This document shows, one piece after another, positions 124-47,907 of a stretch of 64,000 nt of DNA (position 1 is its first letter; each line of letters begins with the position of its first letter). Under the pieces are notes generated by a model that saw nothing but the letters and a program-made list of their open reading frames with translations, did not search any database and was not told the origin of the DNA. Source of the stretch: Bugula neritina (lineage: Eukaryota > Animalia > Bryozoa); NCBI GenBank assembly GCA_964035545.1, contig OZ037769.1:2852001-2916000 (forward strand). Direction: 5' to 3'. A program made the position numbers and the translations under genes.

Positions 124-1269
124 ATGAAACTTGTATTAATAGGAATTCTGGTAGTGGCAGCTGGAATAGCAAACTCTCGAAGAATTCATAATGGTAAAAT
201 ACTTATCATTCTTACAAAAAAGATTGAGTTTTACATTTCTCGAGTCAAGAACAAGTGATAGTTAATAGATAAATATAGAATGTCATATACAATCGAAAAG
301 CTTAACAATTGTTTTTATAGCTCATCAGTCTTTAAGTCTTAAAAGACAAATTAAAAATTGTATTGTATATAGTTGGGATCTAAAACAATTAGTTTTCATT
401 TTTCAAAATTTATTTTAGATGTCGAGTCATATAACATAAGAGCCCGGCGTGGGTTCTCTATGTCGCTAGACCAGTTAAAGTCATTTCTAAATGGACAAAG
501 TGGAAGCACCAATGCCAACTCTAACACCAACACCAACACCAATGCAAATCAGCAAAGCTCCAGTTCGACAAAGAACCTGAAAAACAACTTGAAAAATACT
601 GCTAGAAATTCGGTAACAAACTTGGCAACTGATTATGGCGGTCCAGTTGGTGGCGCGTTGGCGACGAGCCTGACAAGCAAAGGCACCATGAAAAAAGTTG
701 GTAATATGTTCAAAGGACTGGGAAAAAGCAGTAAGTAAATTTCTTTTCTAATAACCAAATTTACGTTTCTAAAAATGGCTGTTGTATGTTAAATAATTAT
801 AAATAGTTACTTGTGACTGTGCAGTGTCTTCTTACATTGTAGCGATTCAATGACTCAATGATGGTTCAGGCTTACTTGCACATATATGCATTGTTTTGGA
901 GATGTATGAATTTATTTGCACGCTTTTATAGAAAAGAAGAAAAAGGAAAAGAAAAAGAAGAAAAAGGCTAAAGAAGCCCAGCAAGCTCAAAACAGTAACA
1001 ATGGTTGTACTTGCAATGGAAATAATGGGAGTAATGGCAGCAATGGAAATAATGGGAATAATGGCAATGGAAATAATGGGAATAATGGAAATAATGGGAA
1101 TAATGGCAATGGAAATAATGGGAGTAATGGTAGCAATGGAAATAATGGAAATAGTAAAAATAACAATAATCGCAATGGTGGCAATGGTAACAATGGGAAA
1201 TCAGGAAACAGCAATGGAAAGCATAAAAATAAGCATAAGAAACAAAATCGTAACAACAATAACAAATAA
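124..1269 (+). CDS. Secreted precursor 1 (~239 aa): signal peptide, RARR furin-type site, cationic helical region, poly-Lys, Asn/Gly repeat tail
   Basis: Exons 124-193 (MKLVLIGILVVAAGIANSRRIHN), 419-730 and 932-1269 join in frame through GT-AG phase-1 introns. The protein reads DVESYNIRARR|GFSMSLDQLKSFL...KKVGNMFKGLGKS-KKKKKEKKKKKKAK...NGNNG repeats. TATAAA lies at 75-80 and AATAAA at ~1302. Confidence 0.85.
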
Positions 1270-2965
1270 TAGAGCTTTTGTCTATGACTTTTTTATTTTG
1301 AAATAAAGTCATGAGACGAAATCATTTAATTTTATGTGAAGTTTTGAGCATTAGTAAAGATCAATTTGCATAAACATTAGCAATATTTTTCCGCATAGAA
1401 AAGTTCTCTTATTTAATAATTTTTTCAATAAATTTTGTAAGAGTAAAAACTCAATATGTATTATAGCCATTTCTCAAATTAACATTTTCAACAAGTTTTC
1501 AAAGACTTTTCAGTCAAGTTTATAGACAACAATTTTTGATCAACATTGGGCCTTCTTTCAATTATATTCTTTAGGTAGATTTTGTGAGTTTCCTTTAGAC
1601 AGATATATCCACATTTCTATAAAGCATATCATACTAATATATTTCATGATGATTTAACACAATGAGCAAAAAGTGTATATTCTATTGAAAACTTAATTAA
1701 AATTGAAAAAACATATCAAAGCTAAATTTTGACAAAGATACAAGCCCTGTTTTTATAATTAGAGATTTAACTTTGCTGTTGACCAATCACATGACTTGAG
1801 AAAAAAAATATATGGAACCATAGGCATTCTTTGCTACATCTTGTTAAGCACAATTTATATCTACATAATATAGCTATCTTCAATTAAGTTCTATAAAAGA
1901 AATTGAGATTATAGCTTTTGTGGAGAAAACTGCAAGAAAATCAAGTTTGGTTGCAGAAGGAGCCTTTATTTAAAACTGAAAGAGTTCAGGAGGCTGCAGT
2001 GTAACAAATATTTGAGCAAACTTAATAAGCCAACATACTAATCATGTTTTATGTTAGCTAGCCTGCTTACTGCTTATATATAGTGCTTACTGCTACAAAA
2101 TGAGAATACTGTGTTAGCTTTTATAACATATATTCCAGCCTTCAAAAGATTGACTGCAGCTGACATGGAAAGATGGCGATAAACATTCTTACAGTGAATG
2201 ATGCCTAAAATATGAATAGTTAAGTGTGCTTGTATGCGATTTGTTATAGATGTGCTTATATGTGAAAAGCTGGATGTGCTTAGAAGCATTTAACTGAAGG
2301 TTATTAGCTGAGTGTGATTATATATGTGGTCAGCTTAGGCTTGCAGTAATTTATAAATAATTTATATTAATTATCAGCATTAGAAAAATTTCTTTTCAAA
2401 ATTGACTGCGGAGTCATCAAACTGTCTAAAAGGCTTGCTTAAAAAGCTGTATTGTATTATGGTCATATGTTCTATGTTTTGAACCTGCCACACAATCAAT
2501 ATTTTAATTCAGCTAAAATTTAAAAGATATTGCTATGCCTCTAACTATTATATGTAGGCTAATTTGTAATAATCTAAATGCATGCAGATATAAGACTGCA
2601 GATCTTTTCCTTAGCTTTGAAGCAGCTCTGAGTCACCCCAGACTTTACTCTTCTTATATGTGTCAGATCAACAGAGCAGAGCACTTGCTTGACATGGCAG
2701 CTCTAGTTGAGATATTTGTAACACTTTTCATTCACTGAACAAGGATGAAACTCATGGGAAGTGAGTGTAGAGATAAACTTAATGATGAAATAGAGCAAAA
2801 GCATTAGCAATGCACCAACCCAGCAGACAGTAAAAACTAAAAAAAACAACTAATAAGAAGCTCAAAAAAAACATAAAATATTGAAAAATTAATTAATTTT
2901 AAAGTTTTAGTAACTTGAAAAATATTATGCATGGTTAACATAATACCCTATAACATTCTGTTAGA

Positions 2966-3195
2966 CTGCTGCTACTTTTACTGCTGCTGCTACTACTACT
3001 GCTATTATTGCTACTACTGCTACTACTATACTACTAATGCTACTGCTACTGCTACTACTGCTGCTGCTACTACTGCTGCTGCTACTGCTACTGCTGCTAC
3101 TGCTGCTGCTACTACTGCTGCTGCTTCTACTACTGCTACTACTATAACTACAATTACTACTGCTACTGTTGCTGCTGCTGCTATTGCTGCGCTGC
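2966..3195. repeat. Imperfect (CTG/CTA)n trinucleotide microsatellite
   Basis: Runs of ctgctg/ctacta; these explain the spurious ORF 2931-3284. Confidence 0.9.
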
Positions 3196-4158
3196 TAGAA
3201 ATATTTAGAATTGTGCCACATAGTTCTTTCTGTAGCTCTACTCCAACAAACCAGCCATATATATATGACAGTTCTGTTGTATAAGTGACACTCTGTGATT
3301 ACAGAACTTGTTAAAATTTAATCACATAAAATATGGTGGTAATATTGTACACTGATTACATGGCTATATTGTAGGTGTGAATTATATTCAGTATTTTTCA
3401 ATTAAACACTAAATTATAGGAACAGCCTTTATTATATACCACTTGGATAAATTTATAAATAACTAAAATAACTATTTATTAATTAAATATATAAAAACTA
3501 TGACATTGTGATATATAGAAGCTTGTAGAGTGAGAGTTTCTCTGAGACAACAGCTTTTTAGTTGTATAAACTTTCAGTATTCAGATTGGTTGATGCCAAT
3601 TGTTTAATCTCTGATACACTTTAATATGTAAACTATAGCTGCATGGTACTGTAAAGTCCAAATTTTAATGGGGCTCACATTAGCATCAAAACCAGGTTTT
3701 CATGCAAGGTATATAAAAATTATACTATACCATATAATATAGCAACTTATTATTATAGTATATAGTATCCTACTTTAGTACCATATTATAATATAGTACA
3801 TTATAATATATAGTACATGGTACAATATAATACTATGTTATAATATATGGTACTGAAATATAGAATACTATACCATGACAGTATATAACTATACAACAAT
3901 TCATGGAAATATTCCAAGTATAGGAAAAACTTGCGGCGTTTATTTAAAACACACCAACTTATGTTTTTCCACGGAATTGCCAATGCCCTCGTCCAGCATG
4001 ATTACATCAGTGTTTATCCACAATGATGTCTATTAAAATAAATGCACAAACAGCATTGGGCTTGGCTGTGGCATTTACCCTAGCTTGGCTGTATAGCGTC
4101 TGTTTAATATAAGCAAAAGGTATCTATGGCAATTCATATTATTTCCCAGTCCATCACC

Positions 4159-7100
4159 ATGGGGTGGAAAATATTTCAGCGACTTCTTTTAACAAATCTT
4201 ATTCTACTGCTAGTGACTTACACTGCAAAAGGCTTGGCACTAGAAGCATCAGGTTTGATAATATTGTTTCTTTTGTTTAAATAAAATTTTATCTTATAGT
4301 TAATCAGAAAAGTTTAAATATGTATATAGTGTTCACAAGATTGAGAATACGAATTTCTCATGTGTTTACAATGTTTAGACTTTATAACAATAATGTAGGT
4401 TTTGTAGTTTTTACTATCATGGCAGTGTGAGTTTAAGAATAATACAGTTTAGAGTCATGAAACTCTATCAAAAGCAGACTAATAAGTAATATTTTTAAAT
4501 CTCTATAATGTATTGAAAATCAGAATTTGCTAGGCTGGTAGCAAGTTTGTAGAGCTTCTATAAAAATTTTCGAATAATTAAAACATGTGTTGCATTTTTA
4601 GATGCAACAGAAGATGTATTGGAAAAACGTGATAAAATTATGGATGAGGCAAAGAAAGCAATTTCTTCAGCTGTAGAGTCAAGTAATGGAGATCCAGTGA
4701 AGTTGAAAAAAGCGCTTGTGAAAGCAGGTGTGGATGGTGCAACAAAGTCTGGAATAAAGACTGCTACTGGTCTTGTTTCTGAATTTGTTGGGTCAAAGTT
4801 TGGAAAAATGGTAGAAGATATTATGAGCAAGGCAGAGAAAGATGTTGACAAGGTGGTTGACAAGTACACTGTGAAAGGAGCTATAAAAGTCAAGCATGCA
4901 GTAAGGAAGGTCTCTCCTCATAAAGAGAAAGGAGATAAGAAGGAATCTAAAAAGAAAATCTCAAAAAAGAAACCTAAATCCAGTGACGGTCATAGCTTAA
5001 AAAGCCATATTCAACAACGAGTTGGTAGTCTGCATGGTAAGTTAGAGAATCAAATTGACTGCAAAATTTCAAAGTATGTGATTTGAGTCTCTAGTGAAGT
5101 AGTGTGGTAATTTAGCGATATAAGTTGTTCGGTGTAGTATTCAATGCCTAAATAGCCTATAACCAACTGCAATTTTAGCACAACATTTTAGGAGGCAAAG
5201 ATAAAAAGCTCCCTGTAAAGAAGCATCATCTAAAGAAAGCTCACCCAAAAAAAGCTCATTCAAAGAAACCTCATTCAAAGAAAGACCACCCAAAGAATGC
5301 TCATCCAAAGAAAGACCACTCAAAGAAACCTCATTCAAAGAAAGATCACTCAAAGAAGGTTAAATCCAAAAAAGCTCACTTAAGGAAAACGCAACCGAAA
5401 AAAGCTTTGTTAAAAGCATCTCACCCTAAAACTGCAATTTCTCACAATCCTAAGAAATCTAATAAAAAAGAGAACCATCTTAAAAAGAAACAACCACTTA
5501 AACACCATTTAATAAAAACTGACCATATAAAACATGGAATACATCCTCCTAAAAACCCTAAGTCTGGTAAAAAGGAAAAGAACAATTTAAAAAAGCCATC
5601 AGCACCAAAGCAACAGACAAAGAAGCAAAAAGCAAAAAAGCAAAATATAAAAAAGATCAATGGTAAAAAGCAGAAGATAGAAGCAACTAAAGCTAAGAAG
5701 CAACAGAGCAGTAAAACTCACCCTAATAAGTTGAAGCAACACAAAGCCGAAAAGCATAAACTAAAAGATGCTTTACACAAAATTGAAAAACCGAAGAAAG
5801 GAAAGGTATCTAAAAAAGTGAAGCAAAAGGTAAACGATAAAAAGAAGTTGTCTGCTGCAAAGCATAAGACTGTGAAGATAGCTAATTCAAAAGCAAAAAA
5901 GTTAAAAGCTAAATCAACAAAAGTAAAAACTCCAAAACCATTGCCTCATTGCAAGCCAAAGGGTAAAAAGCCTTGCCTATTACAATCAGCCAAGAAGTCA
6001 GCAAAGCCTGCATCCAATTCAACTAAAAAAGCTCAAATTCATAAGCCCAAAGCTCCTCCAAAAGGTAAAAAGAAAAAGCCAAAAGTTGACTCAAAAAAAT
6101 CTAAAAACAAATCAGCAACCACTAAACATAAGGTGAAAATTTCCAAAAAGAAAGACCTTAAAAAGAAAACAAAGCCATTGAAGCCGTCAAAACCATCAAA
6201 ACCATCAAAACCATCAAAACCATCAAAACCATCAAAGCCATCCAAACCATCAAAGACATCAAAGACACCAAAACCATTAAAGAAATCAAAGACACCAAAA
6301 CCATTAAAGAAATCAAAGTCGCCAAAGAAATCAAAGCCATTAAAACCATCAAAAACACCAAAGCCATCAAAGACACCAAAACCATTAAAAGCTAAAAAAG
6401 TTAAGCTTCCTACACATAAAAGTCCTCTAAAGAAAAAGGCAAAGAAAAAAGAAAACTTGAAGAAAGCAAATTCTAAAGAACATAAAATCAAACTAGCTGT
6501 AACTAAAAGCAAAGCTAAGATTCACAAGAAAAAAGATCATAAAAATTTACAAGGAAAAAATTCTAAACCTTCTAAGCCTAAGGGCCCAGCAAAAAGCAAA
6601 GATAAGAAAAAAGGAAAGTCAAAGAAGAAGTCTAAACACTCTAAAGTCAAGCCAGCAGCTAATAAAAACACAGTAAAAAAGCCTAAAATTGCACCTGAAA
6701 AGCATGCAGCCCAAAACTCAGATAATAAAAGAGAAAAACGGAAATTAAAAGACATTTTGGGAAAAGTAAAGCTAAAGTTGGAAGTTAGTAAAATAAAAGT
6801 TGACCCAAAGCTTAGCCATAAGCCAGAGTTTTTGAAAGAGGTAGTTCATACTAGTCAGTCAAATAAAAAACCGGCATTAATGGTTGCCATTACAAAGCTC
6901 TTCAACAAAAAGAAACTTCGTGCATCTATGGCACACAAACTAAAGGGAGCAATAAGAAAAGCTCACATGAAGAATGCGATTAAAAATCTTAAATTAAAAC
7001 ATAAGGCTGCGAAAGGCACAAAGAAATTGACTAAGGCTTCTAGTGCTCACCACAGCACAAAGCATGTTTTGCCGAAACCTGCTCCTACTCACCAGAAAGC

Positions 7101-7755
7101 TTCACTCCAACATAAAGCAGAAAAGGTATTGAAGAAAAAACTAAAGAAGCATGATGCTAATAAGAAGGTAGTTCACACAAAAGAAGAGCACAAAGGTAAA
7201 CCAATTGTCAAAAGTCCCACAAACAAAACGAAACATGAAGCTAAGAGTCATAGCAAAGCAACTACAAAGATTACATCCGTAAAAAATGACAAGAAAAAGA
7301 AGAAAGGGAAAGAAGTGAAAGAGCAAGAAAAGTCACATGACTCAAAAAAATCGACACATAAAACTCATGCTGCAGATTCCTCAAAAAAAGCAAAAGAAAA
7401 AGATCAGCTGAAGAAAAAGCTGAAGAAAGTAGAAAAACAGCTCAAGAGGCCTTTAGAAAAAACTTTGGTCAAAGCTGGAGTAAAAGAATTAAAAGCACCT
7501 GAAAAACTCTCAGAAAAAAAGAAAGATAAACTGGAGAAGAAACTATCAACTCTAAAGAAATCACACGAGGAAACACAGAAAAAAGCTCTGAAAAAGGTTC
7601 AAGAGCTGAAGAAACAACTGAAAGATGCAATTAACAGTCCTACAATAACCATTGACAAAGTAAAGAGTCTTTTGAAAGAGATTGTTGCAGAGATCAAAGT
7701 AAAAAAAGCAAAGGCTGTTGGAAAAATAAAAAAGCTGCTTGATAATAAAGATTAA
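4159..7755 (+). CDS. Secreted precursor 2 (~1030 aa): giant Lys/His/Pro/Ser-rich polycationic protein
   Basis: Exon 4159-4252 (MGWKIFQRLLLTNLILLLVTYTAKGLALEAS, signal peptide). Exon 4602-5036 (DATEDVLEKR|DKIMDEAKK...; donor CATG|GTAAGT). Exon 5192-7755 is in frame with ORF 5407-7755, which stays open upstream to the TTTTAG acceptor. Both introns are phase 1. Confidence 0.85.
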
Positions 7756-8300
7756 CTCTGTCGTTAGTATATCCCGGCTTGAACCAAAAACCTTTTGGTC
7801 AGAATGCCTGTTATATTTAATAATGATAAGTTTTAGGAAATAGATTTATTTCCTTGAAACCTTTGTTAAACTGTTACAATATGTGCTTCTGCGCTGTACC
7901 AACTTTTTATGAGTTGTACAACATATGGATTACCAAATATTCACAAAAGTATTATAATAAATATAATATCATAATTTATGCAGCAAGCATTTTATTATAT
8001 ATGAAATAAATTAGAAGCAAATAAAATTAATGTAAACATTTATTATGTGGATGTTAATGCAATTTTTATTGGATCTACTATGTTTTTATAGACATTGGAA
8101 AAAAATAAGACACTAAAAGTGGTATTTTATCAATAAAATATATTAGCTTCACAATATTCTGTGCAGTTTTAAAATTCCAATAATATATTATTAGTAACAG
8201 ATGCTTGGGCATTCAACATAAAAAATATACATGCATTTCACACATTTCAGCAAGCAATAGTCTGTTGATGATTTAAAGTATAAAGCATTAATTAGTATAG

Positions 8301-8457
8301 CAGTAGTGGAGAAATTGAGAAAGTCTAAGTTCTTTAATTTTATTATTAAATTTTGGTTTGAGGCGTGGGTTGAAATTATCATAAGAACATATAATTTTTT
8401 CTGCTACATTTCTAATCTAGAACACAGGCTTAATTTCTCTATTTCTCCATTACTGCA
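8301..8457. mobile_element. Short copy of the TIR element family found at 35.0-35.5 kb
   Basis: GTGGAGAAATTG...AAATTTTGGTTTG...TGCTACATTTCTAATCTAGAA(C/T)ACAGGCTT is shared with 35008-35137. It ends in TTTCTCCATTACTGC, an imperfect inverted copy of its start. Confidence 0.6.
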
Positions 8458-8534
8458 CCTACCACGTATAAAGTGCATATATGTACACACGATACGCAAG
8501 CACAGAATAAGATAACCTAACCAGTTCCTCCCCC

Positions 8535-8858
<324 letters not shown>

Positions 8859-11151
8859 TATGTACTATTGATGATTCAGCTTTATTGTTCGTTCTGGCTC
8901 CTAATATACCACTATATGCAGATCTAGGATCTACTTTTTCTTGTTATAGCTGTAGCTTGAACATTTAAATCATCAATCCATATCTAATATTTGTGGTAGA
9001 GTTCTCTGGTCTCTGATAAAATTATATTAAAACTTTGAGATAGCTCTTGATTTTGACATAGCATGTAACTTGAGAAATATTCAATTAGTGGTTTAAAAGA
9101 CAATTATAGCTACAGTGCTATTGCGCCATAGGCCCTGTCATTTTGTTTATTTTTTTCTCAATTAATTTTTTCCCTACTATGACAAAATAAAAACAAACAA
9201 ACAAACAAACTGTATAGACTTTGTGTCAAGTCATAGCAAGTACATTTGTTACTAGACAACAATTCACCCAACTGATTCTATTTAGTAATTCCTGCAAAGT
9301 TTACACACACTGCCATGCTACATTTAGATAGCAGACAACTCCAGAGAAAGTAAAATCGTTTCGCATATCCTCTAATTATAGTTATTATTGGTGGTCTCAG
9401 AATTTTTCTGTCTGTTTATGAGGATGGATCAGACTTCAGTCATCATTGCAAAACCATGTCAAGATTGTATGCAGAGCTGAATGTATTTATATAAGCTATT
9501 TGGAAGTTTTCCACTGTATAAGTACTTATATCGTCATCTGCATATACCACATTTCACTTCAAATCTACTTCATTCAAGCTTTTGTATTACAGTGTAGGTA
9601 TTTGCTTCAGAGCTAGCAATATAATTCATATGACATAAAAAACATATAAAAAGCGCAATGAAAATCTAAGATTTGTTCAACAGGTTTGTTGGCATTAGAC
9701 CTAATTTTTCAGCACATCATATTTAGGGCATATGCTTATAGCAAGCTTTGTTATATGCTATAACAGCATTTTACACCATTTTATACATTCAATGAGCTGC
9801 CGCATCATGTTTGTTGCAAGTTTTGATAACTTACAAGTTATTAAGATAGACGAGTTTATATAAAAGTGAAGGCTTAAGTACCACGGAACACAAACTAGTT
9901 GAAACTTTCAACTATTCATACAAAAGGCTAATTTTTATAACTTTAGTTTGCAGTCATAGCAACCTGTTATATCTTAAAGGCAAAGCTTTACTGTGCATAC
10001 ACTTTAGAATAAGCTATTACACATAAGTTCTGATTGCAACAACAAAGCTGTTTTTACGCTGTGTGATGCAGGTTCCATTTTAATATTTATTGTTAAGCAT
10101 GTACGAATATTTCATTGTAAATTCCCAAATTCTATTAGCATGTTTCAACAGTGTACGGCATTTCTCTTTGACAAGTTTCAATTAAATTGCATTCTACTTC
10201 CTGAAGCATACCAGCTGTTCCATTTTTCTGCTAGTTTTACTAAAGCCAAGCCGAGGTAAAAATTTCTGGAAACACAAGCTGCTGTCAAGCAGCGTCATGC
10301 CTCTACAGTTAGAACTAGATGCAACAAACCATAAATTAGCCGCGTTTGTGTTTGGACCAGCCGCTTTGCCAAGCTAAGTGTATTGTAAAAGTTTCACATC
10401 GCGTAGTGGTTTGGGCATAATAAAGTATTTATAGATGTCTAATATATACCTAGTTATAAATTTACACAATCACAAAACCATAGCTCATAGTTTGTAGTAT
10501 AATATCTGTTACATTGGTGTCACTATAGGTAAATACTTTTTACTTTAATGCACTTGTTGAAAATGTTTTGCGTTAGAATTGGTAACATTTGTTTCCAAAT
10601 GCGGTTCCATAAATAATTTCACTTCTATGGTCAAATATGCAAAAAATTAGGTGGAAAAATAATGGAAGATGTTAATTTAAAAAGTTAATTTAGAATATTT
10701 AAAGTTTTAGGGTCTATATGCCACGCACGCAAATGACAACCATGCAGCCTAATTATAGTATGTCATAAACTCAGTCTAATGTAGCTATTGGGACATATAC
10801 TCTAAGTAACATCTCATTTATATGCTATTTGAACTATAGTAAACATATTATAAAAGGCTTTTTATTGCATTTTAAATAATTACCCCACAGTTTCTTATAA
10901 TTACAAAGCTTGTAGTTTGCAAAACCGTGCAAGGTGTATAAATGTGCCAACTACCTTTCTTGTAAATAGATTGAAACAAAATTGTGACATATAGCCTATT
11001 CTATATCAGTTTATAGCTAATGCGTGGGCTCTATCACCCACCCTCTACCCAGATAAATTTTCAACATTTGAAAAAGGCAAACACTTGCAGAATGATTTTT
11101 ACATTTTGAAATATTTGAACACTGTTAAAGCAAACTATAATATTCCCCATG

Positions 11152-11358
11152 CAGAGTTGGGGTCAATTACATATGAATGTAATTAATTACAATTATAATT
11201 ACATGAAAATTTGTCAATTTCAATTACAATTATAGTTACAGTTAAAATATATGTAATTAATTACAACTACAATTACATTTTATATACCAAATACAAGTTA
11301 CACTCAATTAATTGAAAAAATTTAATGAATTACAACCAATTACAATTACCCAAACCCT
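11152..11358. mobile_element. MITE-like element with internal (CAATTA)n-type repeats
   Basis: Starts CAGAGTTGGGGTCAATTAC and ends CAATTACCCAAACCCT. A related copy lies in opposite orientation at 30128-30532. Confidence 0.65.
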
Positions 11359-11524
11359 AAATTATCTTCTATAAATAATATATGCGCAATAGCTAGGAGA
11401 GAGGCAAGCGTGTAAAATTACCATCAGCTATACCCCCACAATTGTAGCGCATCTATAGGCTAGAAAGAGTTGTTATGTATTTTAATCATCAGGATCGCAG
11501 CTAATACTTGGAAGTGGTCGACCA

Positions 11525-13201
11525 ATGGAGGCCAGGGTAGCAGCTTTGCTTGCTGTTGTATTACTCATCACTTCTGCAGGTAAATTTTATTTTAGCTTAT
11601 GTGCAACTTGCATGCATATGTTTATTATTTAGATTTTATGATATGGTCATTGTTTACTGTATAGCTACATGGCATATACCAAGCAATGTCCATATGCTAT
11701 ATTATACATACATGAACCATAAACTCATTGATAATTTTTACAAATTATGTAACTGTTATGTTTTTTGCAAATTTTTTTAGTGTTGCATTCCGTATGCATC
11801 TTTATTTTGTATCAACACTACATTACAATATATATTTCAGTTACAAGTACTTCAGTTTCTAAGCTAATTAGTTCGTGCACAATGTTCATTTAAGTCACCA
11901 TTGTTTCGTGATGCTATATATTTCAAGCTCATTACAAGAGCATTCTGTATACCAATATTATTTTTTTCTATTTAAAACAAATCATATCATTACAAATAGC
12001 CATCAACTGCAAATTTCTTGGTATTTTTAATTATGTGTTGAATTGAAAATCAAATTCGAATTATTCATAGAATGAACATTGATTGTTAGACAAGCATAGA
12101 AAGAACCTGATCCTAAATTTAATTACAGTCCAAAAAGTATCATTAAATATAGAAAAGGAAAACATCCTATAAAAACTAGGTGGTAAAAAATCTTCAAACT
12201 ATAAAGAAAAGTTAAAACACCTAACAAATGTCATTTCACATTATCAGAGATGTTGCATTGATGTTATAGTGTATTATGTGTGAAAATTGTTCAAGTCAAT
12301 TTTCGAAATAAGAGTACAATACACATTTACAGCTATATACCTTTAATTTTCTCCTTGTAATATAATTGTTTTTTAAATTGATTGCTTTGATAGGCAGCAC
12401 AGAAAATAATGGCAGATTTGAAAATAAGCAGAATAGAAATAAAGAAGCTGGTAAGAAGCCACTAAAAGAGCTGATAAAAGACACGAAAGAGAAGTTGTCT
12501 TCTACTGGGCAAGGAAACGCTATAGACAAACAAAACAAGCTTCTGCAGCAAATCTTAGACCAGGCAAAAAAGCTGAACTCAAACACCGCAAACAGTAAGG
12601 TATATGTAAAACACCAAGCAGATACTGGAGCTCCATTGCTATCCATTGCTTTGTCACCTGGAAGTGGTAGAAATATACATATATCACCAAATGTCAGGCA
12701 GCATAGTAGAGGCCCAAAACATCATCAACCATCTCAACTGCCCTCTGATGAAAGTAGAAGTGTACACCCCTCACTTCCAGATCAGCATGGTGGATCCAAA
12801 GCTAACTCCAGTACAACATTTCATAAGTTAAAGGAAGCTCTAAAACACATCAACAAAACGAAACTAGCCAAAGGGGCAAAGAAAGCAATATCAGCGGGTA
12901 TATCTGCCTCTTTGGCAATGTATACTGGAGGATTGGGTAACATAGCCTATGAAATGTTGAAAGACCCGATGTCAAAGCTGGCCGACAAAGGTGCTAAGAT
13001 AGTTGCTTCTAAGGCAAAGAAAGGATGGCATTTGTTGAAAGACAAAGGAGCTAAGGCCAAGAATTTTATGAGAAAGCATTTTGGTTAGTATATTGACATT
13101 GTGGATATTGTCTTATTGATGCATTTATATTCATATTATTATAATAATACAAAACACTGAATATTATTATTTTAGGAAAGAAAAAGTCGAAGTCCAACTG
13201 A
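11525..13201 (+). CDS. Secreted precursor 3 (~256 aa) with C-terminal cationic amphipathic helices
   Basis: Exon 11525-11579 (MEARVAALLAVVLLITSA, donor CAG|GTAAAT). Possible micro-exon 11841-11870. Exon 12394-13083 (donor G|GTTAGT). Exon 13176-13201 (GKKKSKSN*). All introns are phase 1. Confidence 0.78.
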
Positions 13202-15331
13202 AACCGTTGTCAGATCCAGTTCCAGACTTCAAGATACACATTGTTACCCAATGTCCAATCGTACGTGTGGACAATAGTATAATAATATAATGAATAATTT
13301 TATTGTTGAAAATAAAATATTATATATCATAACCATCTCTTGAAACATATAATACGATGTACTTTTTATGCAAATGATAGTTCTGTATGAAATTTAAAGC
13401 TGGCTGTAACAATTAAAATTTATTTGAAAATTGTTTAAAAGTGAAAAGAATAAAACACAAGGTTTATTTTTCAAAATACCATTTCCCAAACATTGGACTG
13501 TTTGCACATGTACTTATGCTGAAGCGATACAATTGCATAGTCAACAGAGGGAATTAGCTTTAACAGCCAGCTACAGTCAGCTGTTGGTCTCCATGGATAC
13601 CTAATATACATAATTATTATGAAACTATGTAATAAGAAATGATAATAATATAACAATGACACACATTCTTTTTCAAAAGTTTCTAGGATTTGAATTAGAT
13701 AAATGCATCTGTTTTTTTATTATGTTTCACATTTTGTATTGCTGAGATAAAGACAGATTGTAGCTTTTTGCAAAAAGATCGAAACTGGAATAAATGTTAT
13801 TTTTTTTAATAAAAATCTTGGTTTTCATAGACGTTTCTTATATAAGCAAATGCTTTATGCCCTTTAGCCATTTATTTAAAAGCAATTTAATAAATGACAT
13901 TAAGATCTCATGCACCCTAATATATTATATAATATGAGAAATAGAAATACAAAAATTTTACTGAAACAAATTTTGCAGATTACAAAAATGCAAATTTTAT
14001 AGAAAATATAATATGCTATTTGCTACACAAGTAATGTCCTGAATCTCATTTTGCCATGATTCAAACAACATTTCAACTTTTACCAGCTGCATTCAATAAT
14101 CTTGCAAATTATTTTAGTTCAGATCTGCAAGGTTAAATGGAACAAGTCACTGGAAAAATCATGCAATTATTGCAATCATAATTATGTCATTATAGTTACA
14201 ATGCTATTGTAAATCTTTGATGATAAAATATTAGGCTGGGGAAAGACAACTCTGCGTTGCGATAAAGTATGATAGAAATCTACCAACATTGACAACTATT
14301 TGTATGCTTTCAAGTCTGCGATGTCATGGGTATGTACATGTAGGTATCACTTTTAGCCCAACGTGATTTTAGTTGTTTTGTTATTCATGCTTTACAAAAG
14401 AACAATTTAAAACTGCAAACATTTCAAAAGAAGAAAATGATTTTATTAAAGTTGCATAAACAGCAAGAATCTAGGAAATAACTTATACACTTCAACTTTA
14501 TTATTTTACCAGTATATATTATATGTAGAGTTTAGCATTTATTTTTGTATGAGTACAAATGCAAGTATAGCAAAAATTGTTTATAATCTTACAAAAATCC
14601 AAGCTATTCTTAAGCAACACAACTAAGTCAACACCATCTTATATAGTGTGATTTAAAACTTTGTTTAATAGGTGAGAATTTAACATAAACTTTGTTTTAA
14701 AACAATTGTCCTGGCTAATTAAGCACCAATAAAAACATATATAACTGGAAATACAGAGTTATATATAATAAATGAAATGTATGTTAACATAAATCTGTGC
14801 TGTTTTTCGTTCATTAATCTTCAAACGCATTAACTTTTTTTTTTTAAAAACTTCGAAATATTTCTGATAAAAGCTGTAAATTATTAGCATATATGGCTGT
14901 CATTTGAATTTCTTTATGATATTGTTGGATGAGACGGCACTTTTCAGTTATGTCTACTCTATCAGCATTGTAGCACCTTTAGTAATGTGCATACACTACT
15001 GGACATATATATGTTGAAATTGACATTAACCATTTCACAAACATCGATCTATTGTGGCATCATTGTATATAACGCAATCAATTCTAGTAAAGTTTTGGTA
15101 GAAAAACAATGTTTACTGAATTATATTTAAATATAATAAATAGAATGCTACTGGCAAGCAACTCAACTGCATTTCATATGAAATTTGCAAACGTGGCAAA
15201 AATGCCATCATTGTTTAGCAAAGCAGCATCGCTGTATCTAGCCAAGCACCATTATTTAGAGCTTCACAGGTGCTGTATATCAAGTTATATTACAGTCTAA
15301 AGTTTCATTTCCAATCATTACTTCAGACACA

Positions 15332-16913
15332 ATGGACTCAAACAAGTTGGTGTTTAGTGTAGTAGTGTTTGCCTGTATTTGTGCAACTCTTCATGCAGCT
15401 GCTATTGGACAATCAGGCAAGTTCTAAGTTCTTTCCTTTGTGGTTCTCATGACACAAGACATTTCAAATAGAAGTTTCTTTTTTTTAAATAGATACACAT
15501 TTTACTTAAGTCTATTGTAAAAATATCTTTTGAAAACTCTCAAGGTGACTCAGTTAATCCAAAATTTAAAATGTTATTTTAGTTCAGAAAAGATCTCTAT
15601 TTGAGAACTATTGGAATGACTATAATAAAAGAAGTCTTGAGGATGACATCCGAATAAATAACCTAGAAGAGAGAAGTTTTGAAGACAACAGCTATGCAAA
15701 TGCAGAAAGTCTAGAAGAAAGAAGTTTCGAAGATGATTATAATAATGAAGATGATTTAGAAGAGAGAAGCTTTGAAGATGATTATGATTATGAAGATGAT
15801 TTAGAAGAGAGAAGTTTTGAAGATGGTTATGAAGATGAGGATGATTTGGAAGAAAGAAGCTTTGAAGATGATTATGATTATGAAGATGATTTAGAAGAGA
15901 GAAGTTTTGAAGATGATTATGAAGATGAGAATGATTTGGAGGAAAGAAGCTTTGAAGATGATTATGAAGATGATTTAGAAGAGAGAAGTTTTGAAGATGA
16001 TTATGATTATGAAGACGATTTAGAAGAAAGAAGTTTTGAAGATGATTATGATTATGAAGATGATTTAGAAGAGAGAAGCTTTGAAGATGATTATGAAGAT
16101 GGAGATGATTTGGATGAGAGAAGCTTTGAAGATGATTATGAAGATGAGAATGATTTGGAGGAAAGAAGCTTTGAAGATGATTATGAAGATGATTTAGAAG
16201 AGAGAAGTTTTGAAGATGATTATGATTATGAAGACGATTTAGAAGAAAGAAGTTTTGAAGATGATTATGATTATGAAGATGATTTAGAAGAGAGAAGCTT
16301 TGAAGATGATTATGAAGATGGAGATGATTTGGAAGAGAGAAGTTTTGAAGATGATTATGATTATGAAGATGACTTAGAAGAGAGAAGTTTTGAAGATGAT
16401 TATGATTATGAAGATGATTTGGAAGAAAGAAGCTTTGAAGATGATTATGATTATGAAGATGATTTAGAAGAAAGAAGCTTTGAAGATAATTATGATTATG
16501 ATATGCAACAAAGAAGCTTTGAAGACAGCTTTGAAACTGAAAATAGTTTAGAAAGAAAAAGTTTTGAAGACACAGATTTTGCAAATGAACAAAACCTAGA
16601 AGTTCGCAGTCTTGAAAGCAAAGGTAGATTATTTAAAATACTGAAATTGTTTTGTGTTGGGATGACAACTTGAAATCAAATTGCTTTTGAGCTTTATTTT
16701 TTTTGAGAAGAATCTAAACTTCACTGTATAAAACCTTTGCCCCACACCCCCCCCCCCCCCGGGATTCGAACCCGAGACTTCCGGCTTGCAAGCTATAGCC
16801 ATAAAGCCACAAGGACAACTGGGTGAACTCAACACTACACACTGGAATCAAATTCAATCAGTGTATCAATTTTTTTAGATGAATCAGCATATATTGAAAG
16901 CCTATGGAAATGA
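15332..16913 (+). CDS. Secreted precursor 4 (~386 aa): hyper-acidic tandem-repeat polyprotein (SFEDDYDYEDDLEER)n
   Basis: Exon 15332-15416 (MDSNKLVFSVVVFACICATLHAAAIGQS; GC donor CAG|GCAAGT). Exon 15583-16623 (VQKR|SLFENYWNDYNKR|SLEDD...; 21 SFED units). Exon 16879-16913 (DESAYIESLWK*). The synonymous variation between repeat units keeps this frame. Confidence 0.88.
16745..16825 (-). mobile_element. tRNA-derived SINE-like fragment
   Basis: The minus strand reads ...GCTTGCAAGCCGGAAGTCTCGGGTTCGAATCCC (B box). Related copies lie at ~19240-19305 and ~18312-18350. Confidence 0.6.
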
Positions 16914-16960
16914 TCATGTGGATAAAAGGTAATTATTCTGTTGCACTTGTTTATATGAAG

Positions 16961-17267
16961 TTACCCCCTATTCACACTTACCATACCGTAGGCCGTAACG
17001 TAAAATATCAGCCATTTTTAATGTGTCCGAGCTAAAGTTCCCCAAGTTCGTTATTAGGTATGATCTATGACACTTCATTGGACAATTATATCCAATGAGT
17101 TGACGCAAAAGTTTTTCCGTCCAATAGTAGCCCACCGCAACTTATTTGAATCAAGCAGTGTTTGATTCTACCGTACCGCAACGCCGTACAGGAAGCTCAG
17201 ACATTTGCAAAAATGGCTAATATTTGCTGTTACGGCGTACGATACGGTAAGTGTGAATAGGGGGTAA
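16961..17267. mobile_element. MITE (PIF/Harbinger-like TIRs) in the probable 3'-UTR intron of precursor 4
   Basis: Perfect 22-bp inverted ends TTACCCCCTATTCACACTTACC / GGTAAGTGTGAATAGGGGGTAA, extending imperfectly to ~60 bp. No coding capacity. Confidence 0.85.
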
Positions 17268-18388
17268 GCCTTTGTTTGCAGTAAATAAAATTGTCAACCT
17301 TACATTATGTTATTTATAATATTTTGTATTGCTAAATTATGTTACACCTATTTGTAGAGTTGACACAGAAATAAGAAAATACTCAAGAGAAAACCTGAAT
17401 GATATTTAAAAGATAATTTCTTGAATTCATGACATTTTTAATAAAACCCAAATTAACCTTTTTCTATGTTGTAATAACATGCCTATCAACTATATTCATA
17501 TATAAAATTAATTTGTGTTAAAATCAGAACATTTATCACAACATTTCAATCTAGAAATGACCTAGAAAATAATAGAAACATCAAATATGTTTACATAAGT
17601 GTGAGCAATATAAGTTGTTAATTCAAGTACAAAATACAGAGATCCAAGAGCCTATAATTGGTAAACAATAAGTGAACCATTAGCTGTAACATTCATTGTG
17701 GCTTCACAGAGAAAAATATAAAAGGCGTCACATAATAATATATATGCAGAAAAATTTAAGCTAATTCCATCAATATTATATGGTGATTATTGTGTATAAG
17801 ATTGACTTCAGCCTTAAATCCATTGTCTATTACTTACTGATAACTTGTTATATTGATTGCAAAGTTATATATCATTTGGTTTGTTACATAAAATTCATTA
17901 TTAACTTTAATTAATTAATTGCATTAATTATTAGTAATACTAGTCTATTATTTATGCAGCTACAATAATAATAACACCTGCATCTGATAGGCTCAAACAT
18001 GTCATATGGCAATAAAATGATGTGGTGTCATGCGGACTCTTGTCTTCTATAACTAACAGATTTTTCAACTTATTACCAAAATTAAAAAAAAACTCTAATT
18101 TTATGTTACCAGCTAACATAGGTTTTCCTAGCACTATAATCAACAGAATAATTATAATAATATACATTATATAATAGTGATATAATAACAACTAGCATAT
18201 TGTATGGCCTAAAGTTCAAAATTAGTAGCTAATATATATAAATAATTATCAGTTGTGACATGAACGCAACTTCGTCAGACTTCATAAATAAGTTATATAA
18301 AGCTTTAGCCTCAGGCTTGCAAGCTAACCATTGCACCACAGGGGCTGCTGGGTAGTAACATCAGAAGTTACATCGTGTTTTGCTCCTG

Positions 18389-21302
18389 CTAATACTGCTG
18401 CTCTTCTAGCTGTTTGGCCAATTTCCTCGACTGTTCTTCCAAGGCTCTCCTTTGGCTGTTCATCTTCTCTGTATATTCCATGGAGAGGAGATTGGTTAAT
18501 TCAGGTCCCCGAGCCACAAGGAAGTGACATTTCCGTATTGCTTCTCCTTCCCACGAAAGCTTCAGCTCTTCTCTGTTTATTACTTGTTTCACTTTACCAT
18601 CAGACCTTGGTAGGCAGAGTTGGCTTTCTATGTCGATTTCCTATAAATAATAAAAAGATATTTAATTTTATTTAAACTTTCAAAGGCTTTTTTTAATAAT
18701 GTAAAGGACATTGCCTAATTATATTTCTCTTTTCATCTTTTACCAGCTATTATTACAAATAGTAATTTTTTAGATTAGGTAATGCATTGTTCAACGATAG
18801 AAACTGATGTTGAGGGCAGATTTGGAGTTGTTTGTTCAGTGAGCAGACAACTTTGTTAAACAGAATTCAACATTTGACCAATCAGCGTTTTTGCTTTGAG
18901 CCTCAAAGCTTGCTGAGTATTATTGCAGGCTTATATTTTAATTGTAGATGCTATGTGAAGCATAACCATGGTGTAACAAAGCACATCTTTGGTTTTATGT
19001 AATCATTGTACATATTTTTTAATTTTATTCATACAACATCTGAATTTGAGATGGCTGTTGACAACATTGCTTCACCTTTTTGAGGAATGCCACTTCTTTC
19101 CTCATTCTCTCCACTCCAAAATCTTGAACCTTCTTATGAAACAAATCTACCAAAATTTCATACATCTTCATGTCCGCTGAAACACAAAAATCTCTCATCA
19201 GTCTCACTAATTAATGTGGTGATTATAAAACTTTTGCCTCACTGGGATTCGAACCCAAGACCTCTGGCTTGCAAGCAGACATGCTAGTCATTGCACCACT
19301 ACTGGGTAATTGCAAAGTTTCCCTCAAAGATATTTATATATCTTATAAAACATGGAGGCTGTTAATTCTCGAGTTGATGCAGTTGCATGCTCTTGTTAAT
19401 GCTCATGACAGCTTGGGAGCCTTCAATATGCAATGCCAATTTTATGTAATGCTAACCCAAAACAAAAATTAACTTTTTCTTGAATTTAGTTACATTGATC
19501 TACATTATATCTGAGAGTTTACATTAGTTGCAAGCATTGTAGCTCTATTTTAGCTATAAAGTCAATGTATTAAGTAATCAAGTCATTATGAGCAGCTAAA
19601 TTCTAAGGGGCACAGCTGTAATACTATTCAAACCAACCTTCATTGTAATGAATAATGGTTCTGTTAACGTCAGCTGTTAGTTCTCTCAAGTTGTAGCTTT
19701 CCGGGTGTGGATGAGTGCCAAAAGTAACCAAATCTTTATACTTCCAGTTAAGAGAATGTTTCAGTAAGACTAAAGACTCCATCATGTACTCTTGGAACAT
19801 GACTACGTCAAAATCTTTGTCTAGATACTTTACTTTGTGTTCAACATGTTCTCTATCTTCACTCTGTCGGGGTTGTGATCCCAGCATAAACATTTGAATG
19901 TTGCGATAAGGAAGATTCTTGTCGTAATCAAACGTCAGAGCAAACCGGTTGTAGTGGTCTTCAATAAATGTTTGAAAGGAAGCGCCACGCACGTAGTCCG
20001 ACCAATCATTGTCGTAGTAAGATGCTTGGAGATACAGTACAGGGTGCCTTAACAGTAGGATCTTCCTAGAAGTATATGAATGTCTCAGTTAACAATCGGG
20101 TCTGTCATGTTAATCAGTTGTACAATCAAAAATGTTTTTTATTTGGTTGATTTGTTGGCATGCAAAATACTGTTTTCAGCAAAAAAAGTTAAAACACATT
20201 TGTGTAGCAGTTTTTATAAGCTAGTAAGGTTAACAGATTGATAACAAATTAGTGACGAATTGACTTGTCATTTTACAAAAAAAATGAAAACATGGTATTG
20301 TTTTGAACATGTTTTTAAAGAAGGAAAATTAGAGTGAAGTGCTCGTATACTAGAAGTGATAAATAATTATTGAAAAGTTAGTAATTTTAAACATTGTATT
20401 GGATGGGCAGTTATGATGATTAAATAAAGTTATCCCCCCAGAAGTGTTAGACTGACTTACTTAGGGTTTGGTTTGAGGACAGAAGTAACTGATTCCCTAG
20501 AGTATCGGATCTGGTGAATCAACATGTCATACGGATATTCATTCAGATTCATCACACATGACCTGCGAAGTATATAATCATTCTTGTTATATTTACTTTA
20601 TACAATCGTTATTGGTATATTTACTTCATATTACATTCACTTGAAAAAAATAAGGCTTTTAAACATAATTCAAAAAAACTTTATAACATTATTGATTAAA
20701 TAAATAAACAAGTTGCTATTTTCAAGTCAAAACAATGGCACTTGCAATGTCACAACATATTACGCTTGTGCAGCAGAATTTTGCTGCGCAAGGGAGTTGC
20801 CTTACCTTTCGAATATCATAGGAAAACACATGATGTCTTGGTTGGGTTGAGGCAGAGCAATTTTTAGCTTAGATTCAATAGCTTTCCTAAGCAGTATGTT
20901 TTGTATAGAAGAGGCAAGTGTGCTAGGCGTGTTCAGGAGAAAAATTGTAGTATAATTGGGTCCTGTTGTTTCATCAACAGTCATCACTTCCTGTACGTCT
21001 GCTACGACTTCATTTGGCTTTGCAATATCAGCTGAGTCAGCTTTGGCAACTGGGTCAGCGGCAGCAACAGCAGTATCAACTGGTGCTTTGACATGGACAT
21101 CTCGCACATCCGATTGCATCTTCCTGTGATTACTTTTTATTGGTTGTTCTTGCATTTGCTCTGAGTTGTCTTCCTTTTTGTTAGAGTCATTTTGTTTTGT
21201 AGCCATGCTCCACATCGCATAGAGAAAAACTGTTTGTGTCAACAGGAGAAAAATGACCAATTTGTTGTTCATTATTGTTTTTCTAAGTTTTCTTTTTGAC
21301 AT
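18389..21302 (-). CDS. Galactose-3-O-sulfotransferase (GAL3ST/cerebroside sulfotransferase)-like type II membrane protein, ~459 aa, with a degenerate 5'-PSB motif
   Basis: Exons 21302-20806, 20562-20461, 20065-19638, 19176-19076 and 18640-18389 splice in frame. It has an N-terminal TM segment and stem, and the motifs QNILLR, ILLLRHP...ASYY, FDVVMFQEYMMESLVLLKHSLNW and DMKMYE...FGVERMRKEV typical of GAL3ST. An upstream ATG|GTAAGT at 22069-22067 could add MVY. Confidence 0.85.
19238..19306 (-). mobile_element. tRNA-derived SINE head
   Basis: Minus strand AGTAGTGGTGCAATGACTAGCATGTCTGCTTGCAAGCCAGAGGTCTTGGGTTCGAATCCCAGT has A-box-like and B-box motifs but imperfect stems. Confidence 0.6.

Positions 21303-36253: not shown

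Positions 36254-47907
<11,654 letters not shown>

Follow-up and report, generated by a model that had tools for sequence, protein, structure and literature searches.

Is a protein built of many near-identical acidic units, each beginning with serine directly after a basic residue, a store of short peptides to be cut out, or does it act as one long polyanion? This question is raised by a gene located in a 64,000-nucleotide stretch of the genome of the bryozoan Bugula neritina (contig OZ037769.1, positions 2,852,001 to 2,916,000 of the forward strand). This whole stretch is referred to as the window, and all coordinates are window positions unless another locus is named. The gene occupies positions 15332-16913 of the + strand and consists of three exons. 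It is a single-copy, apparently lineage-restricted host gene for a secreted hyper-acidic tandem-repeat pro-protein of 386 residues. Tentatively, and with a confidence that stops a little short of even, we read its product as a polyprotein whose unit junctions may be cut to yield about 24 pieces, including 21 acidic peptides that start with SFED and are likely phosphorylated and sulfated.

Gene structure and transcription

The gene had been placed at these coordinates in a preliminary description of the window, and reading and translation of the sequence confirm this placement; the joined exons amount to 1161 nt, or 386 codons. The coding part of exon 1 (15332-15416, +) starts with ATG and comprises 28 codons plus one base, ending in phase 1. 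It encodes a 28-residue signal-peptide-like segment, called as such by eye, with a short polar start, a hydrophobic core and the sequence HAAAIGQS. Intron 1 (15417-15582, +) is 166 nt long and has GC..AG ends, with AG/GCAAGT as donor context. It is followed by exon 2 (15583-16623, +; 1041 nt), whose in-frame part at 15585-16622 encodes 346 amino acids, including all repeat units. The start of exon 2 is fixed by RNA contigs, and its end is predicted from the donor AAAG/GTAGAT alone. Upstream of the start codon, the core promoter and 5' untranslated region (UTR) span 15274-15331 (+), with a TATA-like sequence TGTATATCA at about 15274-15284.

Evidence of transcription comes from two sequencing runs (X1 and X2) that belong to one sample of one study and are labelled as metagenomic RNA-Seq, the sample being filed as a symbiont metagenome. 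Contigs of both runs cover the coding part of exon 1. In one contig of each run, position 15414 is joined to 15581 (shiftable by 2, to 15416 and 15583), so that exactly the 166 nt of intron 1 are skipped. Depth in the RNA runs is zero inside intron 1 and upstream of 15295. The DNA-type run X3, which is probably the source of the assembly, covers the whole region, intron 1 included. Since the genome has this locus only, the intron-less form is RNA and not a retrocopy. The acidic gene is transcribed, with splicing of intron 1. A transcript spanning the GC-AG intron, on which the preliminary description had made its peptide interpretation depend, exists in both runs. The longest RNA-labelled contig (record 5 of X2, spanning 15295-15414) begins at 15295, and transcription start is placed near this position, approximately, as contigs cannot fix an end.

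The animals of the RNA runs differ from the window by three coding differences, all of them synonymous. Further, 15 additional letters follow position 15739 in the RNA-labelled contigs of both runs, after which 15710-15740 is repeated. This suggests that animals differ in one unit or in the number of units, that is, a polymorphism of the array. A contig of run X4, obtained from a different sample, aligns to the promoter and exon 1 (15003-15419) over 417 nt, with 20 substitutions and 10 gap positions, and then diverges in intron 1; it represents a divergent haplotype or a sibling lineage.

Repeat units and composition of the product

Exon 2 opens with a short pro-segment ending in VQKR, after which come 24 units, each initiated by Ser after a basic residue. 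In the DNA, Tandem Repeats Finder detects a 45-nt period repeated 17.8 times at 15712-16501 (86% matches, score 1139) and a higher-order period of 219 nt, corresponding to five units, repeated 3.4 times with 92% matches. The core array (15723-16475, +), delimited by Tandem Repeats Finder and a codon table, comprises 17 near-identical units, 15 of 15 amino acids and two of 13, which follow the five-unit period of 219 nt.

When the exon 2 translation is cut after each basic residue preceding Ser, 24 boundaries are obtained. SFED-initial units number exactly 21, and three S-L variants complete the set: SLFE and SLED at the N-terminal side, each after KR, and SLES as the last one, after VR. The same 21 units, bracketed by the same three variants, had been described before. 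The consensus of the core unit is S-F-E-D-D-Y-(D-Y/E-D)-E-D-D-L-E-E-R. Nine units are identical (S-F-E-D-D-Y-D-Y-E-D-D-L-E-E-R, which gives SFEDDYDYEDDLEE once the basic end is removed), and the others have the central D-Y replaced by E-D, E replaced by G, D replaced by N, or two residues missing.

The composition of exon 2 is extreme. Asp accounts for 26% and Glu for 25% of residues (51% acidic). Tyr follows with 9%, and Ser, Arg, Leu and Phe contribute 7-8% each; the translation of exon 2 carries a net charge of -148 and has an isoelectric point (pI) of about 4.05. Basic residues are concentrated at the unit boundaries, where 27 of the 31 present in the whole protein are found. The joined product contains 26 S-x-E sites, and 28 of its 32 tyrosines lie in an acidic context by a simple rule (Asp or Glu next to the Tyr and, up to five positions away on either side, three or more acidic residues and no more than one basic residue). 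In a scan of the whole product, no N-glycosylation sequons were found, and no Cys outside the signal peptide. No basic site in exon 2 is preceded by Gly, the only three glycines of this exon being located inside units. The readings of S-x-E as kinase sites and of acidic Tyr contexts as sulfation sites, proposed in the preliminary description together with the lack of Gly-Lys-Arg amidation signals, thus hold as motif readings.

The product is predicted to be intrinsically disordered. In charge-hydropathy space, a mean net charge of 0.42 and a scaled hydropathy of 0.28 place it far into the disordered region. An AlphaFold2 model built from the single sequence has a predicted local distance difference test (pLDDT) score of 40 and shows the repeats without secondary structure, which is weak evidence taken alone.

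Conservation of unit junctions

We wondered which part of the unit is maintained by selection. Among the 15 full-length core units, the proportion of synonymous differences (pS), taken from a codon table arranged by unit, is 0.46 and that of nonsynonymous differences (pN) is 0.049, giving a pN/pS of 0.11; because unit pairs are not independent, this ratio is indicative and not a formal test. Codons vary synonymously across units at Ser, Phe, Asp, Leu and both Glu positions. Despite this variation, S, F, E, D and Y at the unit start and L, E and R at the unit end are invariant in the core, and amino acid changes in full-length units are limited to unit positions 7-10. These data indicate that the array is protein-coding and under purifying selection.

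The diverged end units, six or seven in number, retain the S-F/L-E-D start and the L-E-x-R end (or KR, RK), while the Tyr cluster at their centre has given way to other residues. In each of the 24 junctions, Ser follows a basic residue, and the general form is hydrophobic(P4)-E/Q/N-x-R/K followed by S-F/L-E-D. LEER occurs at 18 of them, LDER and LEVR at one each, and the other four are VQKR, YNKR, MQQR and LERK. Outside the core array there are seven junctions, and in three of them the site is dibasic (KR, KR and RK); the first of these three is situated four residues past the end of the signal-peptide-like segment. The element under selection thus appears to be the junction itself, composed of hydrophobic P4, Glu-rich P3 and P2, basic P1 and the succeeding Ser, Phe or Leu, Glu and Asp. 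Together with the three dibasic diverged junctions, this conservation favours proteolytic processing.

Proposed processing and modification

Processing could proceed as follows. The pro-protein would enter the secretory pathway, a Fam20C-like kinase would phosphorylate Ser of each S-F-E, and tyrosylprotein sulfotransferase (TPST) would sulfate tyrosines flanked by Asp or Glu. An endoprotease specific for Arg or Lys would cleave the 24 in-register basic sites, three of which are canonical (KR, KR, RK) and 20 of the xE(E)R type. About 24 pieces would be freed in this way, the 21 SFED peptides among them being 13-16 residues long with the basic end and carrying a charge of about -9 each for the core peptide, before any modification. 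Once released, they would most likely behave as soluble polyanions, serving as counter-ions for Ca2+ or for Lys-rich secreted proteins encoded upstream (see below). A role as receptor ligands seems less likely than that of soluble polyanions.

Conditions for the proposed phosphorylation and sulfation appear to be present in the genome, because genes for TPST and for a Fam20C-like kinase are both encoded. The TPST gene lies at G000:C1:8328616-8329993, and one of its exons matches human TPST1 at 5e-32. A Fam20 locus was found at G000:C1:17002323-17004352, with Fam20C as its best relative in the Protein Data Bank (4.9e-19); a second Fam20 locus is closest to the xylose kinase Fam20B. As far as motifs and encoded enzymes go, the product thus resembles a Fam20C substrate (S-x-E on a secretory-type protein, kinase encoded in the genome) and a TPST substrate (acidic Tyr context, no nearby Cys or glycan, enzyme encoded).

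Search for relatives

Are similar genes present elsewhere? Homology searches were performed with exon 2 alone, the joined product being used only for residue counts; the short length of exons 1 and 3 makes them unsuitable as queries. Pfam gave no match to exon 2. In a word-indexed protein search, among the matches listed only P0001 and P0002 appeared, both low-complexity unrelated repeats. An exhaustive HMMER search of 1.84 billion representative proteins returned 24 matches which, on inspection, were unrelated low-complexity repeats with the exception of P0020 (see below), and ESM Atlas contained no usable match to exon 2. Within the Bugula genome itself, three other matches obtained in a protein search were minisatellite frames and no paralogue was found; a back-translated junction pattern matched 18 times, always inside the acidic gene. 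A scan of JGI metagenomes with a degenerate 30-nt pattern gave a single match on a bacterial contig, which was discarded as a chance one.

Neither of the large protein libraries returned the gene's own product, and bryozoans seem to be poorly represented in them. Because of this, the orphan status of the gene is provisional and the absence of relatives is weak evidence. In the literature searched, the unit sequence was found in no paper, and no study of bryozoan skeletal-matrix or adhesive proteins, nor any skeletal proteome of a bryozoan, was found either.

Comparison with known systems

The xEER ends of the units had earlier been likened to the processing quadruplet motif (PQM) of spider venom precursors, defined by Arg at -1 together with one or more Glu at positions -2 to -4 (PMC8290080). 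This definition fits 20 of the 24 junctions. Like the bryozoan protein, spider venom complex precursors consist of a signal peptide followed by many short anionic segments ending in x-E-E-R. In spiders, the linkers open with an inverted PQM (iPQM), in which Arg stands at +1, and lie between cationic linear or cysteine-rich peptides (PMC8290080). PQM linkers thus alternate with cationic peptides, whereas the bryozoan segments directly abut, are all Ser-initial and lack an iPQM. Moreover, the two systems belong to different phyla and share no sequence homology, and we know of no PQM protease outside spiders. The likeness therefore stands as regards the motif, not as regards family membership, against which the missing iPQM, the missing cationic peptides and the taxon all speak. 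The bryozoan gene works like a spider PQM precursor at most and is not a member of that group.

Fungal KEP-type repeat proteins processed by Kex2 or convertases, and P0020, have a similar architecture: like the bryozoan protein, they combine a signal peptide with tandem acidic, aromatic units of 15 residues that end in L-E-(K/E)-R before Ser. P0020 (L022:1273-1791, a Logan contig of 48% GC) contains, besides a signal peptide, four acidic units of 15 residues, most of them ending in LEKR or LDKR, and aligns to exon 2 with 44% identity over 82 residues (E = 2.3e-4). It differs in having true dibasic KR sites and only four units. P0020 is an analogue, and its low-complexity similarity may be convergent. 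Since most of its units end in LEKR or LDKR, the acidic-unit architecture does exist with canonical dibasic sites.

The combination of elements within one unit has precedents as well. Progastrin, cholecystokinin and FGF23-type sites have an S-x-E phosphoserine directly beside the basic site of cleavage, and sulfated Tyr in an acidic run not far away. The same three elements (basic site followed by S-x-E, and Tyr flanked by Asp or Glu) are adjacent in the bryozoan units. Such precursors have one site each and an amidated core, whereas the bryozoan gene has 21-24 repeats and no other peptide.

Further similarities concern proteins that act as polyanions. Granins combine dibasic sites, sulfated Tyr and phosphoserine. 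With them, and with Aspein, Asprich and coral acid-rich proteins, the bryozoan protein shares a signal peptide, about 50% acidic residues, disorder and probably low-affinity, high-capacity binding of Ca2+. Unlike these matrix proteins and granins, it has no poly-Asp runs, Ser-Gly blocks, granin motif or disulfide loop; no Pfam family matched exon 2 and the mature part contains no Cys, so that assignment to granins is not supported. In the cement of sabellariid tubeworms, the polyphosphoserine protein Pc-3/Sa-3 is combined with Lys-rich partners (PMC12621633). It is likewise a secreted polyanion with Fam20C-type sites, and cationic genes adjoin the bryozoan gene. However, Pc-3 is made of poly-Ser and not of Asp, Glu and Tyr, it has no periodic basic residue and no homology to the bryozoan protein, and in Bugula cationic partners are suggested by genomic adjacency.

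Genomic surroundings and 3' part of the gene

Strongly basic, Lys-rich open reading frames (ORFs) occupy 124-13100 (+), within 15 kb upstream of the acidic gene. The ORF at 5407-7755, for example, encodes 782 residues with 35% Lys+Arg, a net charge of +223 and PSK repeats, and others have a pI of 9.7-10.9. In one of these basic genes, the first exon, at about 124, resembles a signal peptide, and an RARR site is present. In another one, the sequence EDVLEKR precedes a cationic module, an L-E-K-R context similar to the junctions of the acidic gene. Comparison of the promoter, exon 1 (signal peptide) and intron 1 of the acidic gene with neighbouring genes revealed no similarity.

Downstream, at a distance of 2.7 kb, lie two exons of a gene of the Gal-3-O-sulfotransferase family (19624-21302, -; Pfam PF06990, E = 1.8e-10 and 2.2e-7), whose product has a membrane anchor at its N-terminus. 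Because this enzyme is a carbohydrate sulfotransferase, its proximity is no evidence for sulfation of Tyr. Elsewhere in the window, a long (CT)n-type microsatellite of 324 nt is present at 8535-8858, and a 30-nt tandem repeat of 7.8 copies (91% matches) at 44781-45015.

The 3' part of the acidic gene was modelled from sequence. Intron 2 (16624-16878, +) is predicted to be 255 nt long with GT..AG ends. Its retention would close the frame at 16673 and give a different tail of 16 residues. The coding part of exon 3 (16879-16913, +), predicted by frame arithmetic, would end the protein with 11 residues, DESAYIESLWK, before the TGA stop codon at 16911-16913. A probable 3' UTR (16914-17289, +) reaches the first AATAAA at 17284.

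Two further sequences were noticed in this part. At about 16745-16800, intron 2 contains a run of 12 C, after which the sequence (GGGATTCGAACCC...) resembles the 3' half of a tRNA in reverse complement; it is probably a fragment of a tRNA-derived short interspersed nuclear element. ARAGORN and Rfam, applied to intron 2 and its flanks, detected no tRNA and nothing above threshold. The other is a 307-bp element at 16961-17267, resembling miniature inverted-repeat transposable elements, with 59-nt inverted ends that are 88% complementary. It starts 48 nt past the stop codon and probably sits within the 3' UTR, which it interrupts ahead of the AATAAA at 17284.

Processing versus alternative explanations

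Processing of the pro-protein is preferred here because conservation is centred on the junctions and because dibasic variants occur among them. Several points weigh against it. Cleavage, phosphorylation and sulfation are read from sequence motifs. Classical cleavage by furin or PC1/2 at a single Arg involves an upstream basic residue at P4, P6 or P8, and 21 of the 24 sites are monobasic with acidic P2 and P3 and have no basic residue at any of these positions. The sole protease that, to our knowledge, uses xEER is the spider venom-gland enzyme. The units follow each other without spacer and without amidation Gly, unlike those of most bioactive multi-copy precursors. Enrichment of second basic residues at junctions is weak, three of the six 'extra' basic residues adjoining a junction (about p = 0.04 by a rough count). 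Identity of the core units is partly due to recent duplication, and the junction argument leans on about seven diverged units. As for the gene itself, intron 2, the C-terminus and the 3' end are predictions that lie outside the RNA-supported part, and the RNA nature of X1 and X2 is taken from their label and coverage pattern in a single sample of a single study.

That the protein instead acts as an intact polyanion, secreted uncut or trimmed at a few dibasic sites, is a substantial possibility, if not our first choice. It might be a Ca-binding matrix protein of skeleton or cuticle, the anionic partner of Lys-rich proteins in a coacervate adhesive, or a condenser of granules similar to granins or serglycin. 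Its composition is like that of acidic matrix and adhesive polyanions, with 51% Asp and Glu and a net charge of -148 to which 26 Ser and 28 Tyr might add, and disorder is predicted. The sites in the core array are not canonical convertase sites, and periodic Phe, Tyr and Leu could serve as cation-pi or hydrophobic stickers. Strongly basic ORFs are at hand within 15 kb upstream, and the cement of sabellariid tubeworms is packed through coacervation between proteins of opposite charge, FAM20C kinases being proposed for the polyanion (PMC12621633). However, charge density leaves unexplained why one basic residue is kept at each boundary and why the junction outlasts the acidic centre in diverged units. 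The neighbours share no promoter or signal-peptide similarity with the acidic gene, and Pfam and protein library searches revealed no homology to any known matrix protein. A related idea, which we regard as rather doubtful, joins both functions: the gene would be a free-standing array of anionic pro-pieces, a trans-encoded phospho/sulfo counter-ion for the adjoining Lys-rich amphipathic proteins. It would take part in a charge-matched two-component secretion, either a coacervate adhesive of larvae or rhizoids or a neutralised store of cationic cytolytic peptides, and the in-register cuts would act as a post-release switch dissolving or activating the complex.

A classical precursor of signalling peptides, neuropeptide- or hormone-like, with units acting as receptor ligands in the manner of non-amidated multi-copy families such as pedal peptide/orcokinin or of sulfated peptides such as sulfakinin, is improbable. 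The signal peptide (by eye), the many identical copies and the in-register basic sites are what such a precursor would show, and FDSIG-like peptides of Bugula likewise start with S-F-D and end with L-K-R (PMC4990251). Yet the acidic gene is absent from the Bugula neritina precursors of that study (PMC4990251), no amidation signal is present and no Pfam family was matched. The unit centre, where the core of a ligand would be expected, is the least conserved part, and in charge (about -9 over 14 residues) the unit does not resemble known ligands. A link to pedal peptide/orcokinin was set aside, as only the S-F-D/E start and the L..R end were shared. More improbable still are sulfotyrosine protease inhibitors comparable to the hirudin tail or to madanin: acidic sulfated tails that bind exosites have a context similar to F-E-D-D-Y-D-Y-E-D-D-L, but the host is a filter-feeding colonial animal and not a blood feeder, the Pfam and HMMER searches showed no homology to these families and a target is not known. 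We hardly credit an inconsequential GAA/GAT-rich minisatellite, open and transcribed by chance. The minus strand is indeed also open for 336 codons, and other minisatellites of the genome gave spurious protein matches. Against this, an exon encoding a signal peptide is spliced on in frame, pN/pS is as low as 0.11, and the orientation of the splice sites fixes the + strand, on which the two other frames are full of stops.

Implications

Literature searches returned almost no molecular description of the materials that bryozoans secrete (skeleton, cuticle, larval glue, defence) and no venom-like protein system. A well-defined, expressed orphan gene is a concrete handle on such materials. The gene seems to be a variant on known kinds, a multi-copy precursor or an acidic repeat secreted protein, and either reading of its role stands at the level of sequence. 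Its 21 near-identical units each pair a likely cleavage site with a Golgi-kinase site and sulfotyrosine contexts, beside genes for cationic proteins of secreted type. Should the units be released and modified, the gene would supply phospho- and sulfo-peptides at a density unusual for a natural source, and this release would mean that serial processing of the Glu-Glu-Arg type also occurs outside spiders. If the protein stays intact, it would be a candidate polyanion for mineral control or coacervate adhesion in Bugula.

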